Shown: positions 162 through 18,592 of the stretch, in pieces
Layout of the letters: each line of letters begins with the position of its first letter
How positions within the stretch are numbered: position 1 is the stretch's first letter
Assembly: GCA_025594325.1 (NCBI GenBank)
Contig: JANHCV010000002.1
Span: 1,798,001 to 1,862,000 of the forward strand
Length of the DNA: 64,000 nucleotides
Source: Blastocladiella emersonii ATCC 22665
Lineage: Eukaryota; Fungi; Blastocladiomycota
Direction: 5' to 3'
Program-made: the position numbers and the translations under genes
The notes under the pieces: model-generated
Seen by the model: only the letters and a program-made list of their open reading frames with translations
What the model was told of the DNA's origin: nothing
Databases searched by the model: none

Positions 162-1670
162 ATGGGCAAGGACCAGGTCGACCCGTCGCCCATCCGCAGC
201 GCTACCCGCCCGCGCGGCACTCGCAGCAACGTCCTCAACACGATCCCCACCCCGACTCGCCTGCGCAACCCCGCGCCATCCGCGGCCCCGCCTGCGAAAC
301 GTCCACGGCTCGGCGAGCCCGCGTCCGCCGCCACGACCGTCGTGGTCCCGTCGTCGTCGCGGCCGTCTTCGTCGTCCTCCACCCTGTCCCCCGTGCCCAC
401 GTCCCCTACCCTCGCGAACGGCGCGCTCGCTGATTCACCCTCACGCCCTGCCTCTACGACTGCTGCTGCTGCGCCCGCTGCCCCTTCCCCCACCCCCGCC
501 CCCGACATCGCCGCCCTCGCTCCCGCGGCGACCACGCCACCCGCCCTGCAGCTGCACCTGCACCAGCGCAGCCGCGAGCTCAACCCGCCGTACGCGGCGC
601 TGCTCGCGTCGCAGATCGCGGCGCCCGCGCTCGACCCCGCCCTCGCCCCGCTCGGCGCCTACCTCTCGGCGCGCTTCGCCGAGTTTGCCCACCACGTCGC
701 CGACCACCTCGACCTCATGACCTTCATGTTCGAGCACAAGGTCGCCGAGGCCGTGGCCAAGCGCGACGACGCCCTCGACCAGCTCACGCGCCTGCTCGTC
801 GCGCGTGGGCTTCTCGCCGAGGGCGAGTTTGTCCCGCCCGCGCCCGCGCCCGTCCTCGACGTCCTGCCCGAGGCCGACTCGTTTGCCGCGATCCGCGGCG
901 AGGGGCTCGACACGCTCGCCCGCATGTTCGCCCAGTTCAAGTTCGACGTGTTCCGCAACCTGACGGACCGCGCCGCCGGGCGGTTCGGCGAGCCGGCTGC
1001 GGCTCCGGCGCCCGCGGTCACGACGGCGGGGCAGCCCGAGGCGGCAGCCACGGGTACTACGACCCCGCCGGTCGTCGCGGCGGCGACGACGTTCAACCTC
1101 GCGACCCCGATGGCATCCAACCCGTCCGCTGCCGTTGCCGATGCTGCCGCCGACGCGTGCGAGTCTGCGGCCGCGTCCTGCGCCGTGACGCCCGTCCCCA
1201 CCTCGGCGGCGGCGCCCGCTGCAGCGAAGCTGACCGCGCCGCGCTCGCCCGCCCTCGTCTTCACGGTCCCCGACTCGAGCTCCCCCGCCACCGCGCCCGC
1301 CTCGACTGCCTCGTCGCCGATGCGCACCCCGGCCCGGCCAGCCAGCGCCGACCCGTCGACGTCCGCGAACTGTACCTCGTCCGCGATCCTCGCCGCGCCC
1401 ACCATCTCTACGGCGGCGGCCGCCGCCACGGAGCCCGCGTCGTCCGCGCCCGTGGCCCTCGGCGCAAGCCTCGGCAGCCCGGCCCGCCCGGCGCCGTCGG
1501 CCCTCTTCGGGTCCGGGTCCTCGCTGTCGGACGCGCTCGCGGCGTCGCCCAGCTTGGCCGCTGCGGCCTCGTTCGGGTTCGGGTTCGGGTTCGGCGCCAC
1601 GATCGTGCGCACGCCGCCTACGCGCGAGGAGGACGAGGAAAAGAAGGAGGAGGCGGGCAAGGATGAGTGA
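162..1670 (+). CDS. Hypothetical low-complexity Ala/Pro/Ser-rich protein (502 aa)
   Basis: Long ATG-started ORF with GC3-rich codon usage, an NLS-like PPAKRPRL, a short ordered helical core (FAEFAHHVADHLDLMTFMFEHKVAEAV) and an acidic/basic C-terminus. No family recognised. Confidence 0.5.
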   Translation: MGKDQVDPSPIRSATRPRGTRSNVLNTIPTPTRLRNPAPSAAPPAKRPRLGEPASAATTVVVPSSSRPSSSSSTLSPVPTSPTLANGALADSPSRPASTTAAAAPAAPSPTPAPDIAALAPAATTPPALQLHLHQRSRELNPPYAALLASQIAAPALDPALAPLGAYLSARFAEFAHHVADHLDLMTFMFEHKVAEAVAKRDDALDQLTRLLVARGLLAEGEFVPPAPAPVLDVLPEADSFAAIRGEGLDTLARMFAQFKFDVFRNLTDRAAGRFGEPAAAPAPAVTTAGQPEAAATGTTTPPVVAAATTFNLATPMASNPSAAVADAAADACESAAASCAVTPVPTSAAAPAAAKLTAPRSPALVFTVPDSSSPATAPASTASSPMRTPARPASADPSTSANCTSSAILAAPTISTAAAAATEPASSAPVALGASLGSPARPAPSALFGSGSSLSDALAASPSLAAAASFGFGFGFGATIVRTPPTREEDEEKKEEAGKDE

Positions 1671-1804
1671 TGTGTGTGTGATTGGATTACAAGAACGCTT
1701 TTTGTATGAATCAAAAGATCAGCCAGCGATCGCGTCTGTGCCGTTGCGACTGGTGGAGAGTAATTCAGTGAGCGCAACGGCAGCCGCGACTGGTGGAGAG
1801 GAAG

Positions 1805-4101
1805 TTACGAAGGGCGGGAAGGAATACGAGTAGGATAGGGTTTGTTGGTCGCAAACATGCTCTCGCGATCAAGACTCGCGTCCTCGAGCGCGACGAGAAA
1901 CTCGGGGACCAGGACAGAGCGAGGTGCCACGCGCGCCACAAGCTCGGCCACGGCCGTGTCGCGGTCCAGGTTGCTGTACTGAGCGAGGCGGCGCGCTTTC
2001 CGAGCCAGCCCGACCGGATCCGCGTGTGCGTCGAGCGCGCCATCGGGGATCAGCGACCAAAATTCGGGCTTCGCGCAGACAAGGCGAGCGTTGGCCAGAA
2101 ACGACGCAGCGGCCGCGGGCGGGTCCGCCACGAACAGGACGTGGACGACCTGCTTCACCGATGCAACGCGGTCGCACGCACACTCGAGTTCAGTTGTCGG
2201 AACAGCAGAAGCACGAGGAGGAGCAATGTGCTCGGCGAGAATGTCCCACAGCGGCGGTTTCACGACCGCGGCCAGCTCGGCTGGGCACGCGGCGGCGAAC
2301 GCGGCCAGGGCGTCGCGCCAGGGCTGCTGGTGCTCGAGCGGGCACGCGAGGCAGACACCGAGTCCCGGAATCGGGGTTGGAGCTTCTGGAGGAACGCCTG
2401 CTCTGCGAACCGTTTTGTAGCCCTTCGGTGTGAACTCCGAAAGGAGAGCGCGAGTGAGGTGACGTGCCACGCCCAAGTCTCGAATCGCGGCCACAGCAGC
2501 GTGGCGCGTTGCTGAGGGTGCGAGCGCCGCGACAAGCAGGCGGTTGAGCTGCTGGAGATGAGACTTGAGCGCAATCTGCATAATCTTGTCAAGGCACGGG
2601 GCGAGGATGGCTAAGAGATCAAGCGGTTCCGCGACAAGCTCGCCGTCAAGGAGCGTCCATTTCAAGTCGAAGGCTGAGATTCGATCAAGGGCTACTGCAA
2701 GCTCCTCAATCGACAAGACCCCGGACGCGAGCGCGTACCGCGCAACATGCTGGGCTCGATGAAGGGCATGTCGCGATCGCAAGCGGTATTCTTGTGTCAA
2801 GGCGGCACAGAACGCTACACGCGGAACGAATGGTTAGCGATCGCTCTGTTGGTACGTGCGAGGGTGAGAACGGTACCATGCTGTATAAAAGTGGCCCAGT
2901 CGCCGTCCGAATACTTTGCTTTGCGGCCCTCGACCAAGCCAAGCTTGCCGCACGCCAGGGCAATTCCAACGATTGCATGCCATAGGTATTCGGAAATCGG
3001 GCAGTGGACTTCAATTCGACGCAATCCGTCAGCATCCAAACCGTCCTCGGCAATCCATTCCAAGATGAGCTTGCCGTACTTGCCATCGATACAGCTGTCG
3101 TTGCTGTCCTGCGCGAGAACGGGCGCAACCAAGTCGGGAAACTTTTCGAGGACTGGGATGAGAACGGTATAATGATGTTGGAGCACGTTGTTGAGGAGCG
3201 CTTGCTTGAAATCGCTCTCGAGCGACGGGCAGGACTCGAGAATCCACGTGGCGACAGTGAACACTTCCTCGGCAAGCTTGTTCGGCGGAATCGCCATCTC
3301 GAACAGAAGGACGCGCATGGGGATTGTCTCGTTGCAAAGCTGGACAACGGACTCGGCGCATCGCGCACCGTGCAAGAGTGCATGAAACAACGGGTAATGC
3401 CAGCAAGCCAGAGCCGTGAAGCAAAGATAGTCGACGAGGCGGACAGGCGCCGCGGGCATTGCAAAATCTCCAAAGAGCCAAGCGCCGTAGTGAGGGCGGC
3501 AGGCCTCGATAAAGAATATCCACTCTTCAAACTTGAGCTCGACGTCGAGAAGCTGGGGCGAGTTCGTAACGACGTGGCCAAGCATGTGGTGAAGGCATTC
3601 CGCGGAGCCGAGCGCAGCAGAGCTGCACAGCAGTCGCAAGAAGCCAATGAGCGGGTGCTCGAGGGGAAACAAGGTCTTGGTTTGGAACGAGTTTGACAGG
3701 CACTCCCGCAGCGCAGTTTCGTTCAGCTCGCTGGGACGGAGCTGGCGGGCGCGCAGGTCCGAAAATTTTGCGAGGAGATAAAAAGGTACTGGCGTCACTT
3801 GGGCCTTGACGGGAGAAAACGGAGACGGGGGCGCATGGGTGGAAATAAGATATTTCGAAGCATCGAGCGGAGTAGGGCTCCCCTCCTGGCAAGAGGTCGC
3901 GCGGAGAAGCTGCCACACGACCGAAAGAGTCCAATGGCGCTGAACGGAGCTTTCGCGCGCAGAGACAGCAAGATGACCGGACGACGCGGCGAGGGCAGCT
4001 CGCGGTTCGGCAAGCTGGAGCACATTTTCCATCAGTTCGCTGGGCAAATCCGCAAGAAGGTAGGCCATAGGGCCGGGTTCAGGTTGCATGGGGTTATTCA
4101 T
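1805..4101 (-). CDS. F-box-like protein, tandem paralog 1 (about 744 aa); exons 4101-2877 and 2814-1805
   Basis: N-terminal F-box-like LLADLPSELMENVLQLA. ORFs 2815-4101 and 1805-2800 join in frame through a 62-nt intron (GTACCG...GCTAAC...GTGTAG, 2876-2815). Colinear with the adjacent paralog. Confidence 0.72.
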
Positions 4102-4290
4102 TGCAGTCTAAAGAGGTGTTCATTTACAGTGGGATGAGCGGGAGAGCTTGGGCTTCGAGCCGAGCGTGCTTGTGCTCGCTCAACGCCACACTTTGACCAA
4201 GGCGCGCGTGAGCTCACGCTGATTTGACCGACGCGTGCAATGTGATTAGTAGAGTCAGCAGGTAGATGTATTCAACTTTATTCCCACATT

Positions 4291-6519
4291 TCAGTATGTT
4301 TCCGAGTCGTTGATGGTCATGATTTCACCGAACACGGGCATCTGGACCGTCCGCGGGGCAACTCGCAAGAAGATCCCGGCCACAACTATCTCAATCTCCT
4401 CGTTTTGGAAGGCTGAGACGTCCCGCGCAAGCCAAGCCAGCTCAACCGGATCGACATGACCGTCGAGCTTGCCAGCAGGAACCAGGTTCCAGGAGGCGGG
4501 TCCAAAAGCCGGCTTTCGCGCAGCGGCGAGGAGCAACTTTGCAGCCATGCTTGGGTTTGCTGCGAAGAGAGCATGAAATAATTGCTTGGCCGACATGGTG
4601 CGGTCGCACGAGAACGTGCGGCCGATTTGAGAAAATCGACCGACTTGAGAAAATGCAGCGCAAGGTGGAGTGGAGCGATCGGCAAGTTTCTGCCATGTGA
4701 AGGCGAACAGTTGCTGAAACAGTACGCTAACCGCTCCAGGGAAAGCGACAACGACTGCAGCTAGCGCGTCACGCCACAGTTGCTGATGTGCGAGGGGACA
4801 TTTGGGGCAAGTCGCATAGCCAAGAAGCGAAGTGTGGCTCGTCGGCCGCCGCTCCGAATGAGGCGGGTCGAACGCCGTGATAAAGGCAAAAACGAGGTCG
4901 CTCGCCTTACCCGAGCTCCGGATCACATCAATCGCCTTCCTCCGAGTTGAACGACGCGCGAGAGCTGCAGCCAGTAGTTGGGGAAGCCCGACAAGTCGAT
5001 CAATGCGCTCGATATGGGCAAAGTGCGGAGCGAGAAGGTGCAGCAGGTCGAGCGGATCCACGACGATATCGCCACGCTGGAGATGGTCCCACGCGTCATA
5101 AAGGCACGGGAGATCATGGAAAACGAGTGAAAGGTCCTTCACGGACAGGACTCTGGATTCAAGCGCGTACTTCATGACGTGCTGAGATGGATGGAGCGAG
5201 AGCTCGTGAATGAACTTTGCGCAAAAGGCTACAGGGTATCGAGATCAGTCACCAAAGTGCACTCGCGAGCCGTGGTTCAAAACGGTACCCTGCAGCAGGA
5301 GAGCTCGCCAGTCGGTTTCGGAATAACGTGCTCGAAGCTCGGCGAGAAAGGAATGATCATGGCGAGCGGCCGCGACTGCAATGATCGAGGCCCACGCCGG
5401 CTCGGAGATGTGACAGAACACTTCGACTCGCTTGAAGTCTCCGACATCAAACTCGCCCTTACTGTACGACTTCGCTAGTTGCTGGCCAAAAGCTTCCTTG
5501 AGGTATATGGCCTGGTCGCGGGAATCGTAGAGAACGGAGTGCGCCAAGGCTGGCGCGCGATCGAAGAGCGCGAAGATAAAATTGCGGTCATTCCCGATGG
5601 CGCGAGAGATAAACAGATCCCGAACGTCTCCAATAAAGTCGGGTTGGTGATCCACGAGCCATGCTATGATCGCAACCACCTCGTTTACAGTCGCATGCTG
5701 TGGTTTGAGCATCTGACCCGCGACGATTTGAATTAGGACCGGGTCGCCAAGGAGCTGGTTGAGTGAAACCTCGCTGACGCGGTACCGGACGCCGCTGATG
5801 AGCCCATGGAAGATCGAAGACCGCCAACAAGCTAGTGCCACGAAGCTGAGAAAGTCGATGGGTCGGACGGGAAACGTGGGCCGCTGGGGGAAAGCACTGA
5901 AGTTGAGATGTGGGGCCAAGCGGACATTCATGATAAGTGTCGTCCATTCGTCGCAATTGAGTTGTACATCAAGGATCTGAGACGACGAAGCAAGCAGATG
6001 GTCGAGCAAGTGGTGCACGGTCCCCTCCAACCCTCGTACAATCGATCCGAGGAGCAAACGCAGACAGCAGGTGAGCGGGTATTGGAGTGGAGTGTCGAGA
6101 CTGACCTTGTTTGAGGCCATCAGAGTCTGCTGTAGGTCCGCCGCATTCATGTTGCGCGGAAGTTTAGAGCGTGCGAGAAGATCGGAAAAGTTGATGAGAA
6201 GCGCAATCGACGCAGGTGCTAGGCAGAGCTTGGTCACGTCGACGTTCCATATATGCGCGCCCAAAAGTCGCGTCGCAACGTCCCAGGGCCGATTGAGCCA
6301 CGGAGCAGAGGGTGCTGACCGAATGAGCTGCCAGACAACCGATAGAGTCCAAGAAAGCCGAAAGGGTGTGTCGCGTGCAGCCACGGCCAGCCGGTCGGAC
6401 GACGCGGCCACGGTTGCGCGCGGACCGACGAGCCGGAGAACCATGCTGACCAACTCGGCGGGAAAACATGCAAGAGTGTAGACCTGCTGGTCCATTTCAT
6501 TTTGCATCAAGTCATTCAT
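4291..6519 (-). CDS. F-box-like protein, tandem paralog 2 (about 722 aa); exons 6519-5289 and 5228-4291
   Basis: TLACFPAELVSMVLRLV F-box-like motif and shared WTLSVVWQL, PLDLL.LLAP and LDGHVDPVELA blocks. A 60-nt phase-1 intron (5288-5229) sits at the same G|GTACCG position as in paralog 1. Confidence 0.72.
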
Positions 6520-10847: not shown

Positions 10848-11480
10848 CGTTGCGCCGAGTCGCGCTGGGCGATGCGCGCGGAACGGCGGAGAAGGTTCGG
10901 GGTCGGGGCCGCCGTGAGCGTGGCCGTTGGCAGGGGGCGGGTGGCTGGCTGGTCGCGCGCCGCCCGTGCGTGTGCGTGAGCGTGGGTCGGCGTGAGGGGT
11001 TGGGATGCGTGACAGCCGAGAGACAGGCGGGCAGGCGAGCAGGCAGGCGACGGACACGACCGAGCGTGAGGCGGGAGCCGCCAGCGGGAGGGAGGGGCGC
11101 GGGGAGAGGACGGGCCGCGCGAGCGTGCGCGGCAGGCGGTCCGATTTCGCGCTGGCGGTGCCGTGTGCGCCGCGCCGCGGAGCGCAATCGGCGAGGCGGG
11201 CGCCGCGTCGCCGGCCATCGCGCCCGCCGCGCCGAGTTGCGTGTTGCCGTGGGACGGGCGCGCGGTCGGCGAGAGCGTTGGCCGCGGCGGCGCGGTCGCG
11301 AGCGCGGGCGACCCAAAGGTCGGCGCCCTCGATTTGCGCCAGGCCTTGCCGCCTCGCCACTCGCGCCCGCAGCTGCTTGTCCCACGCCCGCCGCATCCGA
11401 TGATCCCCGCTCGTGGGCCTCGATCACCGCGTCCCCGTTGCGCCTCACGTTGCGCCGAGTCGCGCTGGGCGATGCGCGCG
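10848..11480. repeat. 33-bp perfect direct repeat (10848-10880 and 11448-11480), 600 bp apart
   Basis: CGTTGCGCCGAGTCGCGCTGGGCGATGCGCGCG is present twice in the divergent intergenic region. Confidence 0.88.
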
Positions 11481-11684
11481 CGAGTACACACATGGAGCCG
11501 TGCCGCTCGTTGCCAAGGTGGTTTGGAGTATACGATCCGAGCGTGGAGAGTGAAAGCTCTTCAGAGCGGTGCGCCACGTTCACGGGGAAAAGGGAAAAGG
11601 GCCAACAACGCTTGCATGTTTTACCTGTCCAACCAGCAGAGCCCCGCACTACCGTGCGCCCTCCCTCTCCAAAAACGTAGCAAC

Positions 11685-13751
11685 ATGACCAAAGGACGGC
11701 CTAAAGCCATGACGACGCAGGACCGTGAGCGGCTTCTTGTCGAGGTCGCCCGCCTCGCGCAGAACCGCGAGTCGCGGCGGTACCCGCCCGAAGCGGCACT
11801 GGCGTTTGGCAGAGACCGCAAACCAATCATCCCCGTGAACGTCGGCGCCATCTCTGTCCCTCTCGCCGCCATCCTTGGTAGCCTGACAAGGGCCGACCTC
11901 TACAGCTACGCCCAGTGCCTCCTCGCCCCTGGCGAGCAAGGCCTTGGCACGACACTCTCGCAGCCGCAGTACTCTGACCTCCCGACGGCCCTCGCCGAGG
12001 CGCTCGACTCGCTCGACCTGCAGCAGGTGGGCGACAGCGAGGAGCTGCTATCACACTTTGGCAGGGCATGCGCACTCTTCCACAACGGCCAGTATGATGC
12101 ACTATTCTACCATCTCCTGCGCATGTACCCGGCTAGTGTGCTCGGCGGGCTCCTCCCAGACAACGTCCGCGTCAACCCCGCCACAGCCACCGCCACCACG
12201 TTCCTGTCGTTGTTTGGGCTCAGCCTCCGCCAGATCCTGGAGGGTAGTGGCCCTGACGGCTTTGCCATCACTGTCGAGCGCCCGCTCACTGCACTCATGG
12301 AGTACATCAGCTTGGTTGACATTCACATCATCAACGGGACCGCGCGGCGGCCGGTTGCTACGCACACGCTCCGCAAGGACAGACGCGCCGTCCACGTCCT
12401 CGAGTACCTGCCGGGTCGCCTGCTGCACGAGGCGGTTGCTGACTTCCTTGAGCTGACCGTCACCAGTGACGCCCTCGCCGCTCATTGTGCAAATGATCTT
12501 GTCCCGCACCTCCTCGCCATCGACCTCAAGAAGCGTGCTGCAAACGAGGGCCTCGAGGTGTCGTTTGAACCAGTTCGAGTACCCACTGTTGACCTTGGTG
12601 AGGGTATCATCAAGGACGCCTACGCATTCTACGCCGAGACCGACGAGACCGCTCTTGACCTCGCTCTCAGCCAGGAATGTACTGTTGGGTACGCACGCAT
12701 GACCACGCGTCCCATGAGTGCACTGACCGTCCCCCCTCACCATCGCCTTAGGGCCAAGAAGCTTGACCCGCAGTGCTACCTCGTCCGCGCCCCGCTTGCC
12801 ACAAGCGACTCATTCCAGGCCTCCGCTGCAGCCAAACCACCATCCGCTACACTCGCTCGCGTGTGGCCCGCCCAGATCGCCTTGATTACCAATCCCGCCA
12901 TAGCGGCACTTGCTCGGCTGCCAGAGCAGCGCGCCACCGCTCCGTCATTGTCAGAGTTTCACGCGCACAAGGCCGCAGCTCTCAACGCGTGCCACGCTGT
13001 ACGGTCCGTCCTCGCGACGCGCCTGCTTGTGGCCCATCCGCGCGCACCACCCGCCGCGCCCGGCTACATGCGCGCCACGCTGCAGGCCCGCCTTTGCGCC
13101 AACAACAAGCGGGCCAAGCACGAGGCCCTTTTCATGGTTTGGGTCAGACACACCTTCGCCGCCAAGCAGGTGCACCTCGCTATCATCCAGGCCGACAAGC
13201 TCCGCGGTCACGCACTCAAGTCGCCGGACGGTACCGAGGCCAACGCGATCCTGCACAAGACCGGCCTCCTCCATGAAGAGCTCCAACGGCAGCAGGCACG
13301 CGTCGCCGACGCCATGGACGCGATCGCCCCGCATCACGGACTCGTCGCCGTCGCCTGCAAGTACACGCAGAAAATCAAGGACATGGGCATCGATCTCGAC
13401 GGCCTGCAGGCGGCAAGTTGGGCGACCCCGCGTCGCCGCCGGGTAGCCCCTCCCGCTGCGCCTGAGCACGTCCAGCCGCTGATCCGCCCTCGCACCCTCC
13501 TCCCGGCGTTCGCCGCGGCGGAGCGGTACCTGACGTTCGCGCTCATCCGCCGACTGGACGGCTGGCACGCCTACTCGCCCCGAGGTCCCCGCAACAAGGA
13601 CTGGGTCACGTTCCCCAACGGTGGCGTGCCACGTAGCGTGTCCCTCACGCAGATCAAGGGCGGGCTGACCATTGGGAACATCTGCAGGACTGCGCGCGTC
13701 TTGCACATCCAGTTCTTTGGCGCGATCTTTGCCATGCCCGCAGTCTTTTGA
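11685..13751 (+). CDS. Hypothetical protein (about 688 aa), apparently intronless
   Basis: Uninterrupted ORF with globular-looking composition from AAC ATG ACC (MTKGRPK). No motif recognised. Confidence 0.55.
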   Translation: MTKGRPKAMTTQDRERLLVEVARLAQNRESRRYPPEAALAFGRDRKPIIPVNVGAISVPLAAILGSLTRADLYSYAQCLLAPGEQGLGTTLSQPQYSDLPTALAEALDSLDLQQVGDSEELLSHFGRACALFHNGQYDALFYHLLRMYPASVLGGLLPDNVRVNPATATATTFLSLFGLSLRQILEGSGPDGFAITVERPLTALMEYISLVDIHIINGTARRPVATHTLRKDRRAVHVLEYLPGRLLHEAVADFLELTVTSDALAAHCANDLVPHLLAIDLKKRAANEGLEVSFEPVRVPTVDLGEGIIKDAYAFYAETDETALDLALSQECTVGYARMTTRPMSALTVPPHHRLRAKKLDPQCYLVRAPLATSDSFQASAAAKPPSATLARVWPAQIALITNPAIAALARLPEQRATAPSLSEFHAHKAAALNACHAVRSVLATRLLVAHPRAPPAAPGYMRATLQARLCANNKRAKHEALFMVWVRHTFAAKQVHLAIIQADKLRGHALKSPDGTEANAILHKTGLLHEELQRQQARVADAMDAIAPHHGLVAVACKYTQKIKDMGIDLDGLQAASWATPRRRRVAPPAAPEHVQPLIRPRTLLPAFAAAERYLTFALIRRLDGWHAYSPRGPRNKDWVTFPNGGVPRSVSLTQIKGGLTIGNICRTARVLHIQFFGAIFAMPAVF

Positions 13752-14271
13752 CCTTATCCCTGTGTTGCTGAGGTTTCCTCTTGTAAACTACCGTTCACCG
13801 CAAGGTGACACGTATGATACTATACACCTCACGTGCACGCGTGCCTCGCGTCTCGCGTTTGTTCGTCCGCTTGTTACTGACGCGCGACGCGTTGCAACAC
13901 GTCCACCCCACCCCGGTTTGCGGACAGCCGCATCCATCTCACTCCCGCCCTCTCTCCCGCTTTTGCAAAGAAACGACAGACAGTAGACCCTCGCTATGAC
14001 TGCACATGCAAACCATCCATCTTTAGTGCCGCCGTGCGCAGCACCACCACCGCTGCCAAGCGATGGACCGCCCGGGTCGCCGCCGATCCGGAGTCCCGCC
14101 ACCGTCCTCGACGTCCCGACCACGACGCCGCCCGCCGACCGCGCCGAGTGTACTTGAGTCTCTCTCTCAGCGCACCGATTCGTCCGTGGTCGTAACCGCT
14201 CGCCGCGCCGTCTAGCGTCCGTGACCCTTGAAGCGCTCGGCCACAGCGGCACCCACCTCGTAGCGACCGCG

Positions 14272-17161
14272 ATGCCGCCATGCCACGACGTTGACGGCGA
14301 CTCGGGCAGCGACGACGAGGACGAGGATGTCGGCCTCGACGCGTTCCCGTCAGCCATTGGTAGCGACCCCAAACTCGCGCCCTCCCCGTGGCGCCGCGAG
14401 TCGCGCGTTGTCACCTCAGGCGCCACGCTCAACGCGACCGCCGCTGATCCCTCGTCGCGCCCGGACCTCGCCGTCTCCGCTGCCAAGTCGGTCGCCGTCG
14501 CACCTCCACCACCGCAGCCGGCGGCCGTGGCGACCAAGGACGATGTGGTTGGCCCGATTGACCACCTGATCCGCTTCATCTCGACGCAATCAACAACGCC
14601 CATCTACCCGCGGTGGTTCGGCGACATTTCGCGCCTTCACTTTGGCTTTACGTGCGCGCTCGGGTGCCTGTGGGTCTTCAACCAGGTCCAGATCGCGCAG
14701 TGGGTTGCCGCCGACCTGGCCACGGCCCCGCTGCTGTCGCGCGCGTGGTTGACGCGGCGGCCAGGAACAAGCGATACGAGGTTCACGGACGCCATCACGC
14801 TCGTGTTCCTCGCCGCGTACGTCAAGGAGCTCGTGCGGCTCGCCATGTGGCTCCACCTCGTTCTCGTTCGACGCGTAACGGCGTTCTCCAAGTACCAATA
14901 CGGTGCGTTCCGCGCGCGTGAAGCGCGGTCGTGGCCACGCTGACCATCGCGCCGCGTGTGTAGCCTTTGTCACGTACTCGGGCCTCATGCTCCCGCTCCT
15001 CTTCACCTCGTCGCACCACGTCTCGGCCATCGTCAAGTCCAAGGCCTACGACGTGATCGTCTCGCCCGAGGGTACTCATCTTCCTCCCGCACACATCCTC
15101 GCCCCACCCACTAACCCCTCCCGCAAACCTAGTCGTGATCCTAGACCTCGTCACCGTGGACCTACCCCAAGCCGCCAAAGCCATCTACGCCTTCTACCGC
15201 GGCACCGCGACGGGCAGCGCGCAGCTGACCTCCCTGTGGACCACCGTGTCGGTCGGCTTCAAGATGTCCCGCTTCCTTTGGAAGGTCGTCCTCGCGATCC
15301 ACCAGCAACAACTCATTCAGCGCGCGCGCGCGCGCCGGTCGCTCGCGCTGCTCGAGTGGACGCACGCGCTGCAGCACGCCGTCGGCGTCGTCGGGTCGCC
15401 CGCCGCGGCCTCCGCCGTCGCCGCCCGCATGCCGCGCGCGGTTCTCGCGTCGGGCGGACGCGATCCAACGGCCCGCGCCGTCGACGAGTTCACGCCCGTC
15501 CTGACGTCCGTGCTTGAGTGCACCGCGATCGTCGGGCACCAGGCACTCTGGCGCGTGCTTCGCGGCGTGCCCGTCGGTAGCGGCGCGAGCCTCGCAAGCG
15601 GGGGAGGAGGGGCGGGCGGGCTCGGGTCCGCGAGAGAGCTGCGGCTCGCGGCGAAAGAAACTCGGCTCGCGCTCGCGCTCCGCGGACCCGCCGCCACGTC
15701 GCAGCCCGGGTCGGCCGCCGGGTCCGCGGGGAATCTGGGGACCAGCGAGACGCTGACGGGCGGCGGCGCGCGGTCGCCGTCGGGCAGCGTGACGGCCGTG
15801 GCCACGCGCGCCGCGGCTGCCGCGCAGGCGCCAAGGAAGGGCAGCATCGTGGCCCTGACGACCGGCGTGCTCAAGCGGTGGTCGCTGACCGGCGGCAGCG
15901 GCGCCAGTCCCGCGGCATCCACCGAGTCCGCTGACGCTCCTCCCGGGGCCCCGGTCCCTGCGGACCCCGTCGAGCAGGAACTCTGCGCGGTGGTCCTCGC
16001 GCACGCCGACGCGCTGGCGTACCTCGAGCGCACGCCGCCGCTCGATGTGGTGGTGACGGACGACGTGGTGGCCGCGGTGCGCGCGGTCTGGGGCACGCGC
16101 GCGATGCAGGCCGTCGTGAGCAGGGTGCGCGACGCGCCGGCGGCCGCGTGGCACGACCGCGTCATGGCGGCGTGGCCGCGCGATGTCACGGCTACGATGC
16201 GCGCGGGCGAGGTCGTTGGGATGCTTGCGTTTAGGCTCAAGCTCGTCGCCTTGTACGCTCACTCGCAACGATGACGACGGTGATGGATCCTGACCCCTCG
16301 CGCGTGTAGCTGCCTCGATCGGAGCGAAAAGTTCCTGCGGCGGTCGGCCCGGCTCAAGGTCAACGACGTGATGCAGTGCCCGCACTCGGCCGCCGAGATG
16401 GTCCTCGGCGACGCATTCGGGGTGCCCGCCGCACCGCGCGTCGTGTCCCGCGCCGACCTCACGTTCGCACTGTTCCCGCTCGCGCCCGCGGGCATGGCGA
16501 TGCAGAGCAAGCTGGTACGCTCACTCTTCCGTCCCGAGAAGTTGGTTGGGCAGGACTGATGCGTTCAAGTGTAGCTCGACCTGGCCAACCTGTTTGTCGT
16601 GACGCTGCACCTCGACGAGTTTGACGTGGTCGTGCCCGCGACCGCGGGGCCGACCGGCGAGCCAAGAAGGCCATCGACCAGCGATGGTCACGCCGCTGGA
16701 GGCGAGACGACGCAGCTCCTCGAGACGATCCGGCTCGTCGAGCAGCTCCTGCCCGTGCGTGAGCGCGGCCGGAGGGTGATTCTCGTGTGTCTCGGCGTAC
16801 CCGAGTTCAAGGTCCGTGGTCGGTGCCCTTCTCGTGATCCATCCACCAACTGACCCCGCTCTACGGCGTGTGTGTGTAGGAGAAGCTGGCCGCGGGCACC
16901 ATCTCGCCCGATTTCCTGCGCCGGCACTACCGTAAGCTCGTCCACCTCGCCGGCGGCGGCCGCGACCCGCGCGACCTGTGGGACAGCGGCGCCGTGGCCG
17001 AGTACCTGCGTCAGGCGCTAGCCAAGGTAAACCCAGTCGCGCGCGCGGCGCTGCTGACGGACGAGAACGGGCTCGACGCGTGCATGCTGGCGCTGCTGCT
17101 CGAGTTTGACGTGCGCACGCAGCAGGGGTTGTTGAATACCGCGGATATCGCCATGGAGTAA
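14272..17161 (+). CDS. Multi-pass membrane protein fused to a degenerate heterotrimeric G-protein alpha-like domain (about 860 aa); exons 14272-14902, 14964-15071, 15133-16252, 16310-16514, 16575-16811, 16880-17161
   Basis: Five canonical GT-AG introns join the exons in frame (2583 nt). About 4-5 hydrophobic helices are followed by segments colinear with G-alpha, e.g. FCLDRSEKFLRRSARLKVNDVMQ, DLTFALF, LHLDEFDVVV, VILVCLGVPEFKEKL and LLTDENGL. Confidence 0.7.
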
Positions 17162-17207
17162 AGTCGATCAGCTGTATCATGTTCATCTAAAATCTTCACC
17201 CTTTCAT

Positions 17208-18276
17208 CTACACGGCCACCACATCGATCGCGGCCTCGGCGCGCTCCTCGGGCGTCACGTCCAGCAGCCGCTCAATGTCGCGCTTGCTCTGGACCAGGCG
17301 CAGCTCGTGCTTGCGCAGCACGTCGGCGCGCGAGTCCTCGCCTTCGCGGAGCTGCGACTGCGCGTACGCGTGCGTCGTGTGCAGCACGCGCTGCATGACC
17401 CACACGGCGTTGGCCGCCGTCGTCGCCGCGTCGAGACCCGCGTCGCCGCCCTCGGCGACCTTGATCGCGCCCGCACGACCCTCGGGCCGCCACGCGCCGC
17501 GCGCCGCGAGCGTGCCGGCGATCAGGCCCGAGAACAGGTCGCCGGTGCCCGTGAAGTGCGCCGTCATGCGCGGGAACCGCACGGTCCACGCGGCGTCGGC
17601 GATCGCGTCGTAGACGAGGAGGGCGAGGGTCGACGCGATCGCGACGTCGGGCGTGTCGAGCGTCGTGATGAAGACGAGCGCGGCTCCGCCCATGGCGGCG
17701 AGCGCGCGCGCCGCGGTCACGGCGGACATCGCCGAGTCGATGGTCACGCCCGAAAGCAGCTCGGCCTCGAACTGGTTCGGCGTCATGACGTCGGCCATGG
17801 GAAGGAAGTGCGTCTTGTAGTGGTCGATCATCTCGGGCGGGAGGTACAGCTTGCCGTTGTCGCCGAGGACGGGGTCGAGGACTAGAGAGGCTCGGCGCGC
17901 GTGAGCGTTGGTAGGACGCAGCGGGTGCGCGCGATCACGTACGGTACAGGGCGTTGGCGCTGCGCGTCTTGACGTCCTTGATCCCAGCCGCGACAGTCGG
18001 CACGCCCTCGGGGAGGCCCATGTAGCCCGTCAGGATCACGCTGTAGTCGGTGTCGTGGCCGTTGGCCTTGAGGGCCTCGAAGACGCCGGCGAAATGGGCG
18101 GCGTCGAAGCGCGTGCCGCGGATCGTCGGGTACCCCGAGTGGTTCGACACCTGGACCGTGTTGAAGGCGTCCACCTCGTTGCCGAGCAGCTGCAGCGGGA
18201 ACACGGCCGACATGTTGCCGACGTGCCCGTGCACGACGTGCGACTGGATCGCGAGGACGCGGCGCGAAGTCGTCAT
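17208..18276 (-). CDS. BUD16: Pyridoxal kinase (PfkB/ribokinase family, 335 aa); intron 17942-17882
   Basis: RVLAIQSHVVHGHVGN, NTVQVSNHSGY, LTGY, LDPVLGDNGKLY, TPNQFEAELL and FTGTGDLF motifs. Confidence 0.92.
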
Positions 18277-18592
18277 GGCTTTAGTTGATACGTTGCAGGG
18301 GTACGGCGGCAAGGGGAGCGTGGATGGGTTGAGTGGCGAAGGCGGCGAGGGTGGGTGGCGCCGGCCGCGGACAATACTCGCACGTGAGACGGAGACATTT
18401 TTTTGTAATCGCGTCCATCGCGTTGGGAAAGCGGATGGACCCCTGACTCATGCTGCGTCATGCACGCACACGCGTCCGAGACGGGCGTCTCCCGCCCCAC
18501 GCTCCTCGCCGCGGCCGCAGCGATGGACAAGCCAGCGGCGATCCTCGCTCTCCCAATACAAGGACCCTACATTGCAACGTATTGCAATCACC

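Follow-up and report, generated by a model that had tools for sequence, protein, structure and literature searches.

A probable membrane-fused G-alpha-like protein family without GTP-binding motifs in Blastocladiomycota

The window analyzed here is a 64,000-nucleotide stretch of the water mold Blastocladiella emersonii ATCC 22665 (contig JANHCV010000002.1), a GC-rich eukaryotic DNA with 65% guanine plus cytosine (GC). At 14272..17161 on its forward strand lies a six-exon gene whose predicted product joins a hydrophobic helical module, probably a membrane domain, to a C-terminal part that appears to keep the fold of a heterotrimeric G-alpha subunit without any of the motifs that bind guanosine triphosphate (GTP). 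We translated positions 14200-17200 in three frames and joined the open frames by hand at GT..AG sites, which gave the exons 14272-14902 (14216-14902 when the frame is extended upstream), 14964-15071, 15133-16252, 16310-16514, 16575-16811, and 16880-17161, separated by five GT..AG introns of 57-68 nucleotides (14903-14963, 15072-15132, 16253-16309, 16515-16574, and 16812-16879). The spliced product is an 860-codon open frame from the Met codon at 14272, and its third-position GC is 0.81-0.92 in each 100-codon block, compared with 0.55-0.72 in the introns. The largest exon, used as query in an exhaustive phmmer search, retrieved the NCBI entry H9P43_002534, a 100% identical "hypothetical protein" of 930 residues from the same strain, which, mapped back onto the window, has the same five introns as the hand-spliced gene. 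These introns also coincide in alignment column and phase (1,1,2,0,0) with five of the seven introns of the Allomyces macrogynus orthologue AMAG_07528, whose exact exon structure was reconstructed along with that of the A. arbusculus orthologue. An earlier reading of this DNA (the original prediction) had claimed five introns; the public model and the introns shared with Allomyces confirm that claim and, at the level of sequence, the reality of the gene. The sequencing runs listed for the source sample are three of DNA and none of RNA, and the comparative data take the place of transcripts here. The public model begins 276 nucleotides 5' of 14272 with an optional first coding exon at 13996..14149 on the same strand (residues 1-51, by exact mapping), which is followed by an intron at 14150-14215. 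Positions 13996-14271 are not conserved among orthologues, and the candidate start codons are at 13996 or 14272/14281.

An exhaustive protein search at E<=1e-3 yielded eight family representatives, all annotated as hypothetical or uncharacterized and none with a Pfam domain. The features described below are on the forward strand, with residues numbered as in H9P43_002534. The N-terminal region (14272..14538) is acidic, rich in Pro and Ala, poorly conserved, and probably disordered, and the orthologues cannot be aligned there. It is followed by a hydrophobic module of ~210 residues (14626..15299), interrupted by the first two introns, for which hydropathy and AlphaFold2 (AF2) models predict five helices: H1 (189-216), H2 (241-269), H3 (280-306), H4 (315-338), and H5 (348-372). 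The most conserved part of the family is the DLVTVDLPQ motif of H4 (residues 321-329; 15144..15170), which contains the VDLPQ sequence singled out by the original prediction; D321, L322, D326, and P328 are invariant in 8/8 members, placing two invariant Asp and an invariant Pro within a hydrophobic helix. Further invariant residues are P315 in H4, S362, W366, and L370 in H5, and Q376, R384, and R385 in the alpha-N helix that follows. S356 and R363 of H5 are invariant in the full-length members and altered in one metagenome fragment, and the Arg of the H5 motif SR(F/V/I).W is Asp in one metagenome member.

Profile and word-indexed searches with the hydrophobic module found no Pfam match, no PDB match, and no stand-alone homologue; its language-model neighbors are unnamed eukaryotic clusters and XK-related multi-pass proteins at 0.80. 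The module is not that of a G protein-coupled receptor (GPCR) or other 7tm protein: its hydrophobic helices number four to five, and neither Pfam nor the PDB gave a match. On sequence grounds the module is a probable 4-5-pass membrane domain, most simply one of four passes (H1, H2, H4, and H5). The original prediction had counted 4-5 transmembrane (TM) helices; five hydrophobic helices are predicted here, and their integration into the membrane is judged likely from hydropathy. H5 runs into alpha-N as one helix of ~50 residues (179-228 of the AF2 model of the Sorochytrium milnesiophthora orthologue). The H5/alpha-N/beta-1 junction lies without a stop codon inside the single 1120-nucleotide exon 15133-16252; the fusion of the two parts is therefore not an artefact of the splicing model, and the alternative that the TM and G-alpha parts belong to separate genes is not upheld.

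The G-alpha-like part begins with the alpha-N equivalent (residues 373-398, QRA.ARR..ALL.W; 15300..15377), which the AF2 model places as an unbroken continuation of H5. Next come beta-1 and a remnant of the G1/P-loop, AVGVVGSPAAASAV (15378..15419), with no GK[S/T]. Alignments place a low-complexity Gly/Ala/Ser insert (residues 461-593; 15564..15962), absent from Sorochytrium, between alpha-A and the remaining helical domain. That all-helical domain (residues 594-701; 15963..16343), delineated by hhalign and AF2, contains VT..V.AA..AVW....MQ and the alpha-F segment FCLDR and spans the intron 16253-16309. It leads into a linker 2/switch I (G2) remnant, DVMQCPHSAAEMVLGDAF (residues 709-726; 16365..16418), in which Pro stands at the position of the catalytic Arg and Ala at that of the Mg-binding Thr; PHS.AE within linker 2 is conserved across the family. 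Beta-3 and a G3 remnant, DLTFALFPLAPA (16455..16490), replace F.MFDVGGQ, and the switch II that should follow is unrecognizable. Beta-4, LFVVTLHLDEFDVVV, is placed by alignment and hhalign together with a 24-residue insert (residues 779-802) unique to B. emersonii (16590..16706). Beta-5 and a G4 remnant, RVILVCLGVPEFKEKL, replace ILFLNK.DLF.EKI at 16773..16888, across the intron 16812-16879. Finally, the model and the alignment put three elements at 17045..17158: beta-6, the G5 remnant AALLTDENG where canonical G-alphas have TCATDT, and alpha-5, which runs up to the stop codon.

AF2 was run without templates on the eight-sequence alignment. The B. emersonii domain model has the G-alpha order of secondary structure, and its top 50 Foldseek matches in the PDB are all G-alpha chains. 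Because that model was poor, the compact Sorochytrium orthologue, whose homology to the window protein is secure by sequence, was modeled instead. With this model Foldseek returned 232 PDB matches at E<=1e-3, the top 50 all being G-alpha (best 1.9e-7), while in the AlphaFold database of Swiss-Prot entries (AFDB/Swiss-Prot) the top 30 were all G-alpha, plant XLG1-3, or Dictyostelium spalten; G-alpha matches reach E 5e-8. The Foldseek alignment runs from alpha-N to the C terminus (model residues 189/200-629 to G-alpha residues about 5-360), and VIA-align, at a Z of 17.9, matched model residues 200-628 to residues 3-353 of receptor-bound Gi chains, covering 220/223 residues of the Gi Ras domain. 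At the end of alpha-5, model residues up to 628-629 align with the last residues of G-alpha chains. Both AF2 models reproduce the Ras-like core in the order beta1-alpha1 ... beta2-beta3-alpha2-beta4-alpha3-beta5-alphaG-alpha4-beta6-alpha5. The predicted structures also contain the alpha-N helix and the all-helical insert, formed by helices 262-440 of the Sorochytrium model between alpha-1 and beta-2.

ESM language-model features of residues 600-930 gave 100/100 nearest Atlas clusters assigned to PF00503, the top cluster scoring 0.90 with 185/256 features in common. A query with the last exon only had returned PolyA-polymerase neighbors at low recognition and was discarded in favor of the whole-domain query. 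As a canonical reference, a P-loop pattern scan of metagenome contigs supplied 49 full-length G-alpha open reading frames (ORFs), 26 of which were aligned into a profile. Among the 120 P-loop pattern loci on metagenome and metatranscriptome contigs, these 49 ORFs encode 338-434 residues and carry an MG(x)(x)C/S-type start in all but three (L010, L068, and L090); in L029 and L124 that start lies 3' of the first in-frame Met. Against the 26-sequence profile, hhalign aligned the family collinearly over 193 columns (E 0.0023, score 31.4), or with E 0.018 and a score of 26.7 when alpha-N was included. By comparison, 30 column-shuffled G-alpha profiles scored 15.4 +/- 2.2 (maximum 18.9), and the reversed profile 22.6 over 59 columns. 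The alignment pairs VT..V.AA..AVW....MQ with L..I..LW.D.GIQ, FCLDR..RFL with YYFD...RI, DV...P with QDVLR.R, F.DV with FDVGGQ, TTQL...I with NRM.EAL, and V.V..NY..FKAKI with ILFLNK.DLF.EKI. Together, these predictions support a complete heterotrimeric G-alpha fold from alpha-N to alpha-5. A G-alpha domain is what the original prediction had proposed; AF2 with Foldseek, VIA-align, ESM, and hhalign agree on it, the tools recover the same residue-level register, and all six of its motif matches coincide with G1-G5 and alpha-F/linker-2 positions by predicted secondary structure and hhalign.

With motif positions anchored on the predicted strands and helices and on the hhalign alignment, every nucleotide-binding or catalytic motif (G1-G5) is replaced in the sequences of all known members. 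In G1 (canonical GxxxxGK[S/T]) the first Gly alone is kept, in six of the eight members (GSPAAASA in B. emersonii, GTEPCRTR in Sorochytrium, and GSGAARAA in Catenaria). In G2 (R..T) the Arg position is Pro, with Arg in Sorochytrium only, and Ala, Leu, or Met replaces the Mg-binding Thr. The FDVGGQ of G3 appears as FLDV in Sorochytrium, FIDV in Catenaria, and FPLAPA in B. emersonii. The NKxD of G4 appears as NYAQF or NYERF in four members, which keep the Asn and lose the Lys and Asp, and as GVPEF in B. emersonii. In G5 (TCATD) the sequence is (L/I)(L/F/I)TD, so that Thr-Asp is kept. In a regular-expression scan of all eight members, Walker A and DxxGQ occurred nowhere, and NKxD did not occur in any G-alpha-like part. 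The 26 canonical G-alphas share a switch II block, R.ER.KWIHCF, with little or no variation; the family has no counterpart of it, and this region varies in length among genera, with an 8-residue insert in Catenaria. The N terminus, MTAHANH or MPPCHDV, lacks the MG..C/S lipidation signal, whose G2 and C5 are nearly invariant in the same 26 proteins. The loss of GTP-binding and hydrolysis motifs, including the catalytic Arg, is thus as the original prediction described it. Sorochytrium and Catenaria keep more ancestral motif residues than Blastocladiella, and this graded loss across genera is as expected for descent from a genuine G-alpha. Among the soluble surfaces, conservation is highest in the helical domain and in alpha-F/linker 2 (FCLDR and PHS.AE), not on the classical effector or G-beta faces.

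The distribution seen is confined to Blastocladiomycota and two metagenome contigs. The named relatives are Blastocladiella britannica, Allomyces arbusculus, A. macrogynus, Catenaria anguillulae, and Sorochytrium milnesiophthora. BLASTP gave 1e-119 over the full length between B. emersonii and Allomyces, and 6e-29 (membrane module to alpha-A) and 7e-11 (helical and Ras part) between Allomyces and Sorochytrium. Two members are fragments from one Joint Genome Institute (JGI) metagenome, 3300047125, on the short eukaryotic contigs L003 (at about 2000-5900) and L004 (at about 930-3470), both of 42-46% GC, where a prokaryotic gene caller split the gene into exon-sized "genes"; both contigs hold more collinear exons of the same gene. 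L004 has the full collinear C-terminal domain, ending ...LQAANLA, and the N-terminal two thirds alone were recognized in L003. Word-indexed protein searches, run with the C-terminal region and with alignments of the full-length protein and of the membrane module, added nothing beyond A. macrogynus. A 2147-residue protein with E 2.6e-10 was rejected as a relative; its 77-residue tandem repeats match one short segment repeatedly. Public models look incomplete: that of B. britannica stops following the family after beta-3, its last residues being unrelated, and that of C. anguillulae begins inside the hydrophobic module, without H1-H3.

Selection was estimated as the ratio of nonsynonymous to synonymous substitutions (dN/dS, Nei-Gojobori) between A. 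macrogynus and A. arbusculus, which share 89% amino-acid identity at a dS of 0.47. The Blastocladiella pair was unsuited to this purpose, with 48% amino-acid identity, saturated synonymous sites, and the truncated B. britannica model. In the Allomyces pair dN/dS is 0.13 for the whole protein, 0.05 for the hydrophobic module, 0.05 from alpha-N to alpha-A, 0.086 for the helical and Ras part, 0.17 for the low-complexity insert, and 0.31 for the disordered N terminus; dS is 0.38-0.64 across regions, and 41% of aligned intron sites differ. By these sequence comparisons, both domains are under strong purifying selection and the gene is not decaying; the orthologues under purifying selection that the original prediction called for were found, at 0.05-0.09 in the folded parts. 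Downstream of the gene, at 17208-18312 on the reverse strand, lies a convergent gene, interrupted by at least one intron, of the Phos_pyr_kin/PfkB (pyridoxal-kinase) type. A convergent Phos_pyr_kin neighbor stands 3' of the gene in the window, A. macrogynus, A. arbusculus, and contig L004, and the genes of these four loci are for this reason taken to be orthologues in conserved microsynteny. This microsynteny has persisted through deep divergence within Blastocladiomycota. Directly upstream, on the same strand, is an intronless, Ala/Arg/Pro-rich ORF of 862 codons (11163-13751).

Based on the models and alignments, we propose that the protein is a membrane-anchored, nucleotide-free G-alpha fold coupled to a membrane module by way of one unbroken TM5/alpha-N helix, a reading to which we assign a probability of roughly 0.6. 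The G-alpha-like domain, from its motifs, would bind no guanine nucleotide and so belong to the class-i-type pseudoGTPases. Several observations weigh against this proposal. Pfam returned no PF00503 match at E<=10, either for five pieces of exon sequence or for seven family proteins, full or partial, and phmmer and hmmsearch against the PDB with exon, C-terminal, beta4-alpha5, and membrane-module queries gave chance-level matches only. The predicted local distance difference test (pLDDT) score is 50 for the B. emersonii domain model and only 58 overall for the Sorochytrium model, in which block means are 64-86 in the C-terminal Ras-like half and below 50 in the membrane module. TM-scores to G-alpha are <0.5, which we attribute to inaccurate domain packing in low-depth models. 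Kyte-Doolittle 19-residue means across members are 1.3-1.8 for H1/H2 and 0.8-2.1 for H4/H5, and in these Ala/Val/Leu-rich proteins values of 1.6-1.8 are also reached by buried parts of the soluble domain; because these ranges overlap, membrane insertion is no more than likely. Degenerate G-alphas can also retain weak nucleotide binding, as XLG2 shows, and the loss proposed here is deduced from motifs.

This overlap in hydropathy, with helix peaks no higher than those of buried soluble-domain strands, also lends some weight to the view that the protein is a soluble, "extra-large" pseudo-G-alpha whose N-terminal helices form a soluble or peripheral bundle and which acts as a cytosolic scaffold like the plant XLGs. 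The helices carry Lys, Glu, Arg, and Asp, they are the low-confidence part of the AF2 model, and there is no signal peptide. We consider this reading unlikely, if still a real contender: the helices are long (24-37 residues), H5 and alpha-N form one 50-residue helix, the four hydrophobic segments are conserved in all members, and the language-model neighbors include multi-pass XK-related proteins. The module moreover stands in place of the near-invariant MG..C lipid signal, which fits a substituted membrane anchor.

If the protein is in the membrane, its dead G-alpha domain might serve as a tethered sink or decoy that permanently holds G-beta-gamma, RGS, or GoLoco partners there, as the original prediction suggested for G-beta-gamma. 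XLGs bind G-beta-gamma without nucleotide (PMC8584482), canonical G-protein subunits exist in Allomyces (PMC3971589), and the family retains a conserved alpha-N helix, one element of the G-beta interface. A G-beta-gamma sink is nevertheless improbable because the G-beta-binding signature of switch II has been lost, and what replaces it differs in sequence and length among members. Still less probable is a noncanonical switch whose rebuilt pocket binds GTP, guanosine diphosphate (GDP), or another ligand. The conserved PHS.AE and TDE.G line the former nucleotide pocket, the first P-loop Gly is mostly kept, and XLG2 keeps very weak GTP-gamma-S binding (PMC8584482); on the other side, the P-loop Lys and Ser/Thr, the G4 Asp, and the G3 Gly-Gln occur in no member, and the remnants vary between genera, unlike a conserved ligand site. 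The view that the domain is no G-alpha at all, and resembles one by chance or has another fold such as that of a degenerate class III nucleotidyl cyclase, is largely refuted: although Pfam gives nothing and the best sequence-profile match in the PDB is the start of the NPR-A guanylyl cyclase domain (LPHSVAEQL vs. PHSLAEL), that match is not significant (E 0.12), a match to a calcium-dependent protein kinase (CDPK) from the beta4-alpha5 sub-alignment is equally weak (E 0.02), the order of secondary structure is that of G-alpha and not of a cyclase, the structural and language-model matches are all G-alpha, and hhalign scores above its controls. No soluble motif of the family is better conserved than PHSLAEL, whose likeness to the class III guanylyl cyclase sequence we judge to be coincidental.

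In the membrane-anchored, nucleotide-free protein that we favor, the helical module would span the membrane with four passes (H1, H2, H4, and H5), an arrangement that would leave both the acidic N terminus and the G-alpha fold in the cytosol, and it would substitute for the MG..C lipid anchor. A conformational change in the membrane module could then be passed through the rigid TM5/alpha-N helix to the nucleotide-free G-alpha fold, the two parts acting as one unit, and the invariant intramembrane D....D.P of H4 and SR(F/V/I).W of H5 may belong to this signal-passing module. The G-alpha fold itself may be a docking or regulatory platform, or a conformational output, for lineage-specific partners. 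Such a platform would probably bypass the canonical switch II/G-beta-gamma interface; the helical domain and the alpha-F/linker-2 face (FCLDR and PHS.AE) are better candidates. A further elaboration, which we regard as doubtful, is a one-chain "receptor plus transducer," in which the 4-5-helix module is placed like a GPCR against alpha-N and alpha-5. The G-alpha fold, locked without nucleotide in a state like that of a receptor-engaged G-alpha, would then signal through conformation alone. If true, this would be the first integral-membrane G-alpha-derived pseudoGTPase and a Blastocladiomycota-specific type of signaling, for example, in zoospore sensing.

Heterotrimeric G-alpha subunits are lipid-anchored GTP switches. 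The canonical fungal G-alphas (Gpa1-Gpa4, PF00503) share with this family alpha-N, beta-1 to beta-6, alpha-1 to alpha-5, and the helical insert, and collinear remnants of them persist as LW..G.Q, YY.D..RI, QDV, F.DV, NK.D.F..KI, and TD. Unlike them, the family lacks GxxxxGK[S/T], R..T, DxxGQ, NKxD, TCA, and MG..C, adds the ~210-residue module and a long disordered N terminus, and falls below every sequence-profile threshold. The closest precedent is in the plant XLGs, whose G-alpha function is nucleotide-independent (PMC8584482). XLG1-3 (Q9C516, C6KIE6, and O80462 among the Foldseek AFDB/Swiss-Prot matches) resemble this family in their G-alpha fold, extended N terminus, and deviant catalytic motifs, and also in functioning independently of nucleotide, as is proposed here for the fungal proteins. 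They differ in that their extension is soluble, Cys-rich, and equipped with a nuclear localization signal (NLS), in place of an acidic disordered N terminus followed by hydrophobic helices, and in that PF00503 still recognizes them, most of their switch II persists, and they bind G-beta-gamma. XLGs are plant-specific, which points to an independent origin of the fungal family. Dictyostelium spalten and G-alpha-like alpha-10 (O15743 and Q55EP5) are likewise lineage-specific, divergent G-alpha-like domains fused to or accompanied by another module; in spalten, however, that module is a C-terminal PP2C phosphatase, there is no transmembrane module, and the relation is limited to the G-alpha fold. 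Engineered GPCR-G-alpha fusions such as beta2AR-Gs (PMC9721090) also combine a membrane module and a G-alpha in one chain, but they are artificial and join a 7TM receptor by a flexible linker to the N terminus of an active G-alpha, whereas this family has 4-5 helices, no GPCR signature, a continuous-helix link, and a dead G-alpha.

Full-text literature searches, which were not exhaustive, turned up no account of a pseudo-G-alpha that is transmembrane-fused or specific to Blastocladiomycota, and the surveys of G-protein evolution in PMC3971589 and PMC13393502 do not list the architecture; within that scope, the searches agree with the original prediction that it is undescribed. From sequence, the protein is probably an atypical G-alpha with deviant motifs, set in a membrane-fused architecture that is new, a case in which the whole G-alpha fold appears to survive under strong constraint without any GTP-binding motif. 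If this is true, it would be a second independent case, beside the plant XLGs, of a G-alpha fold apparently working without nucleotide, and the idea would become testable outside plants. It would also add a G-alpha-derived, possibly integral-membrane member to the pseudoGTPases, and it would mean that standard annotation entirely misses such proteins. Blastocladiomycota are known for unusual sensory fusions, such as the rhodopsin-guanylyl cyclase, and the family described here appears to be another trait specific to this lineage.

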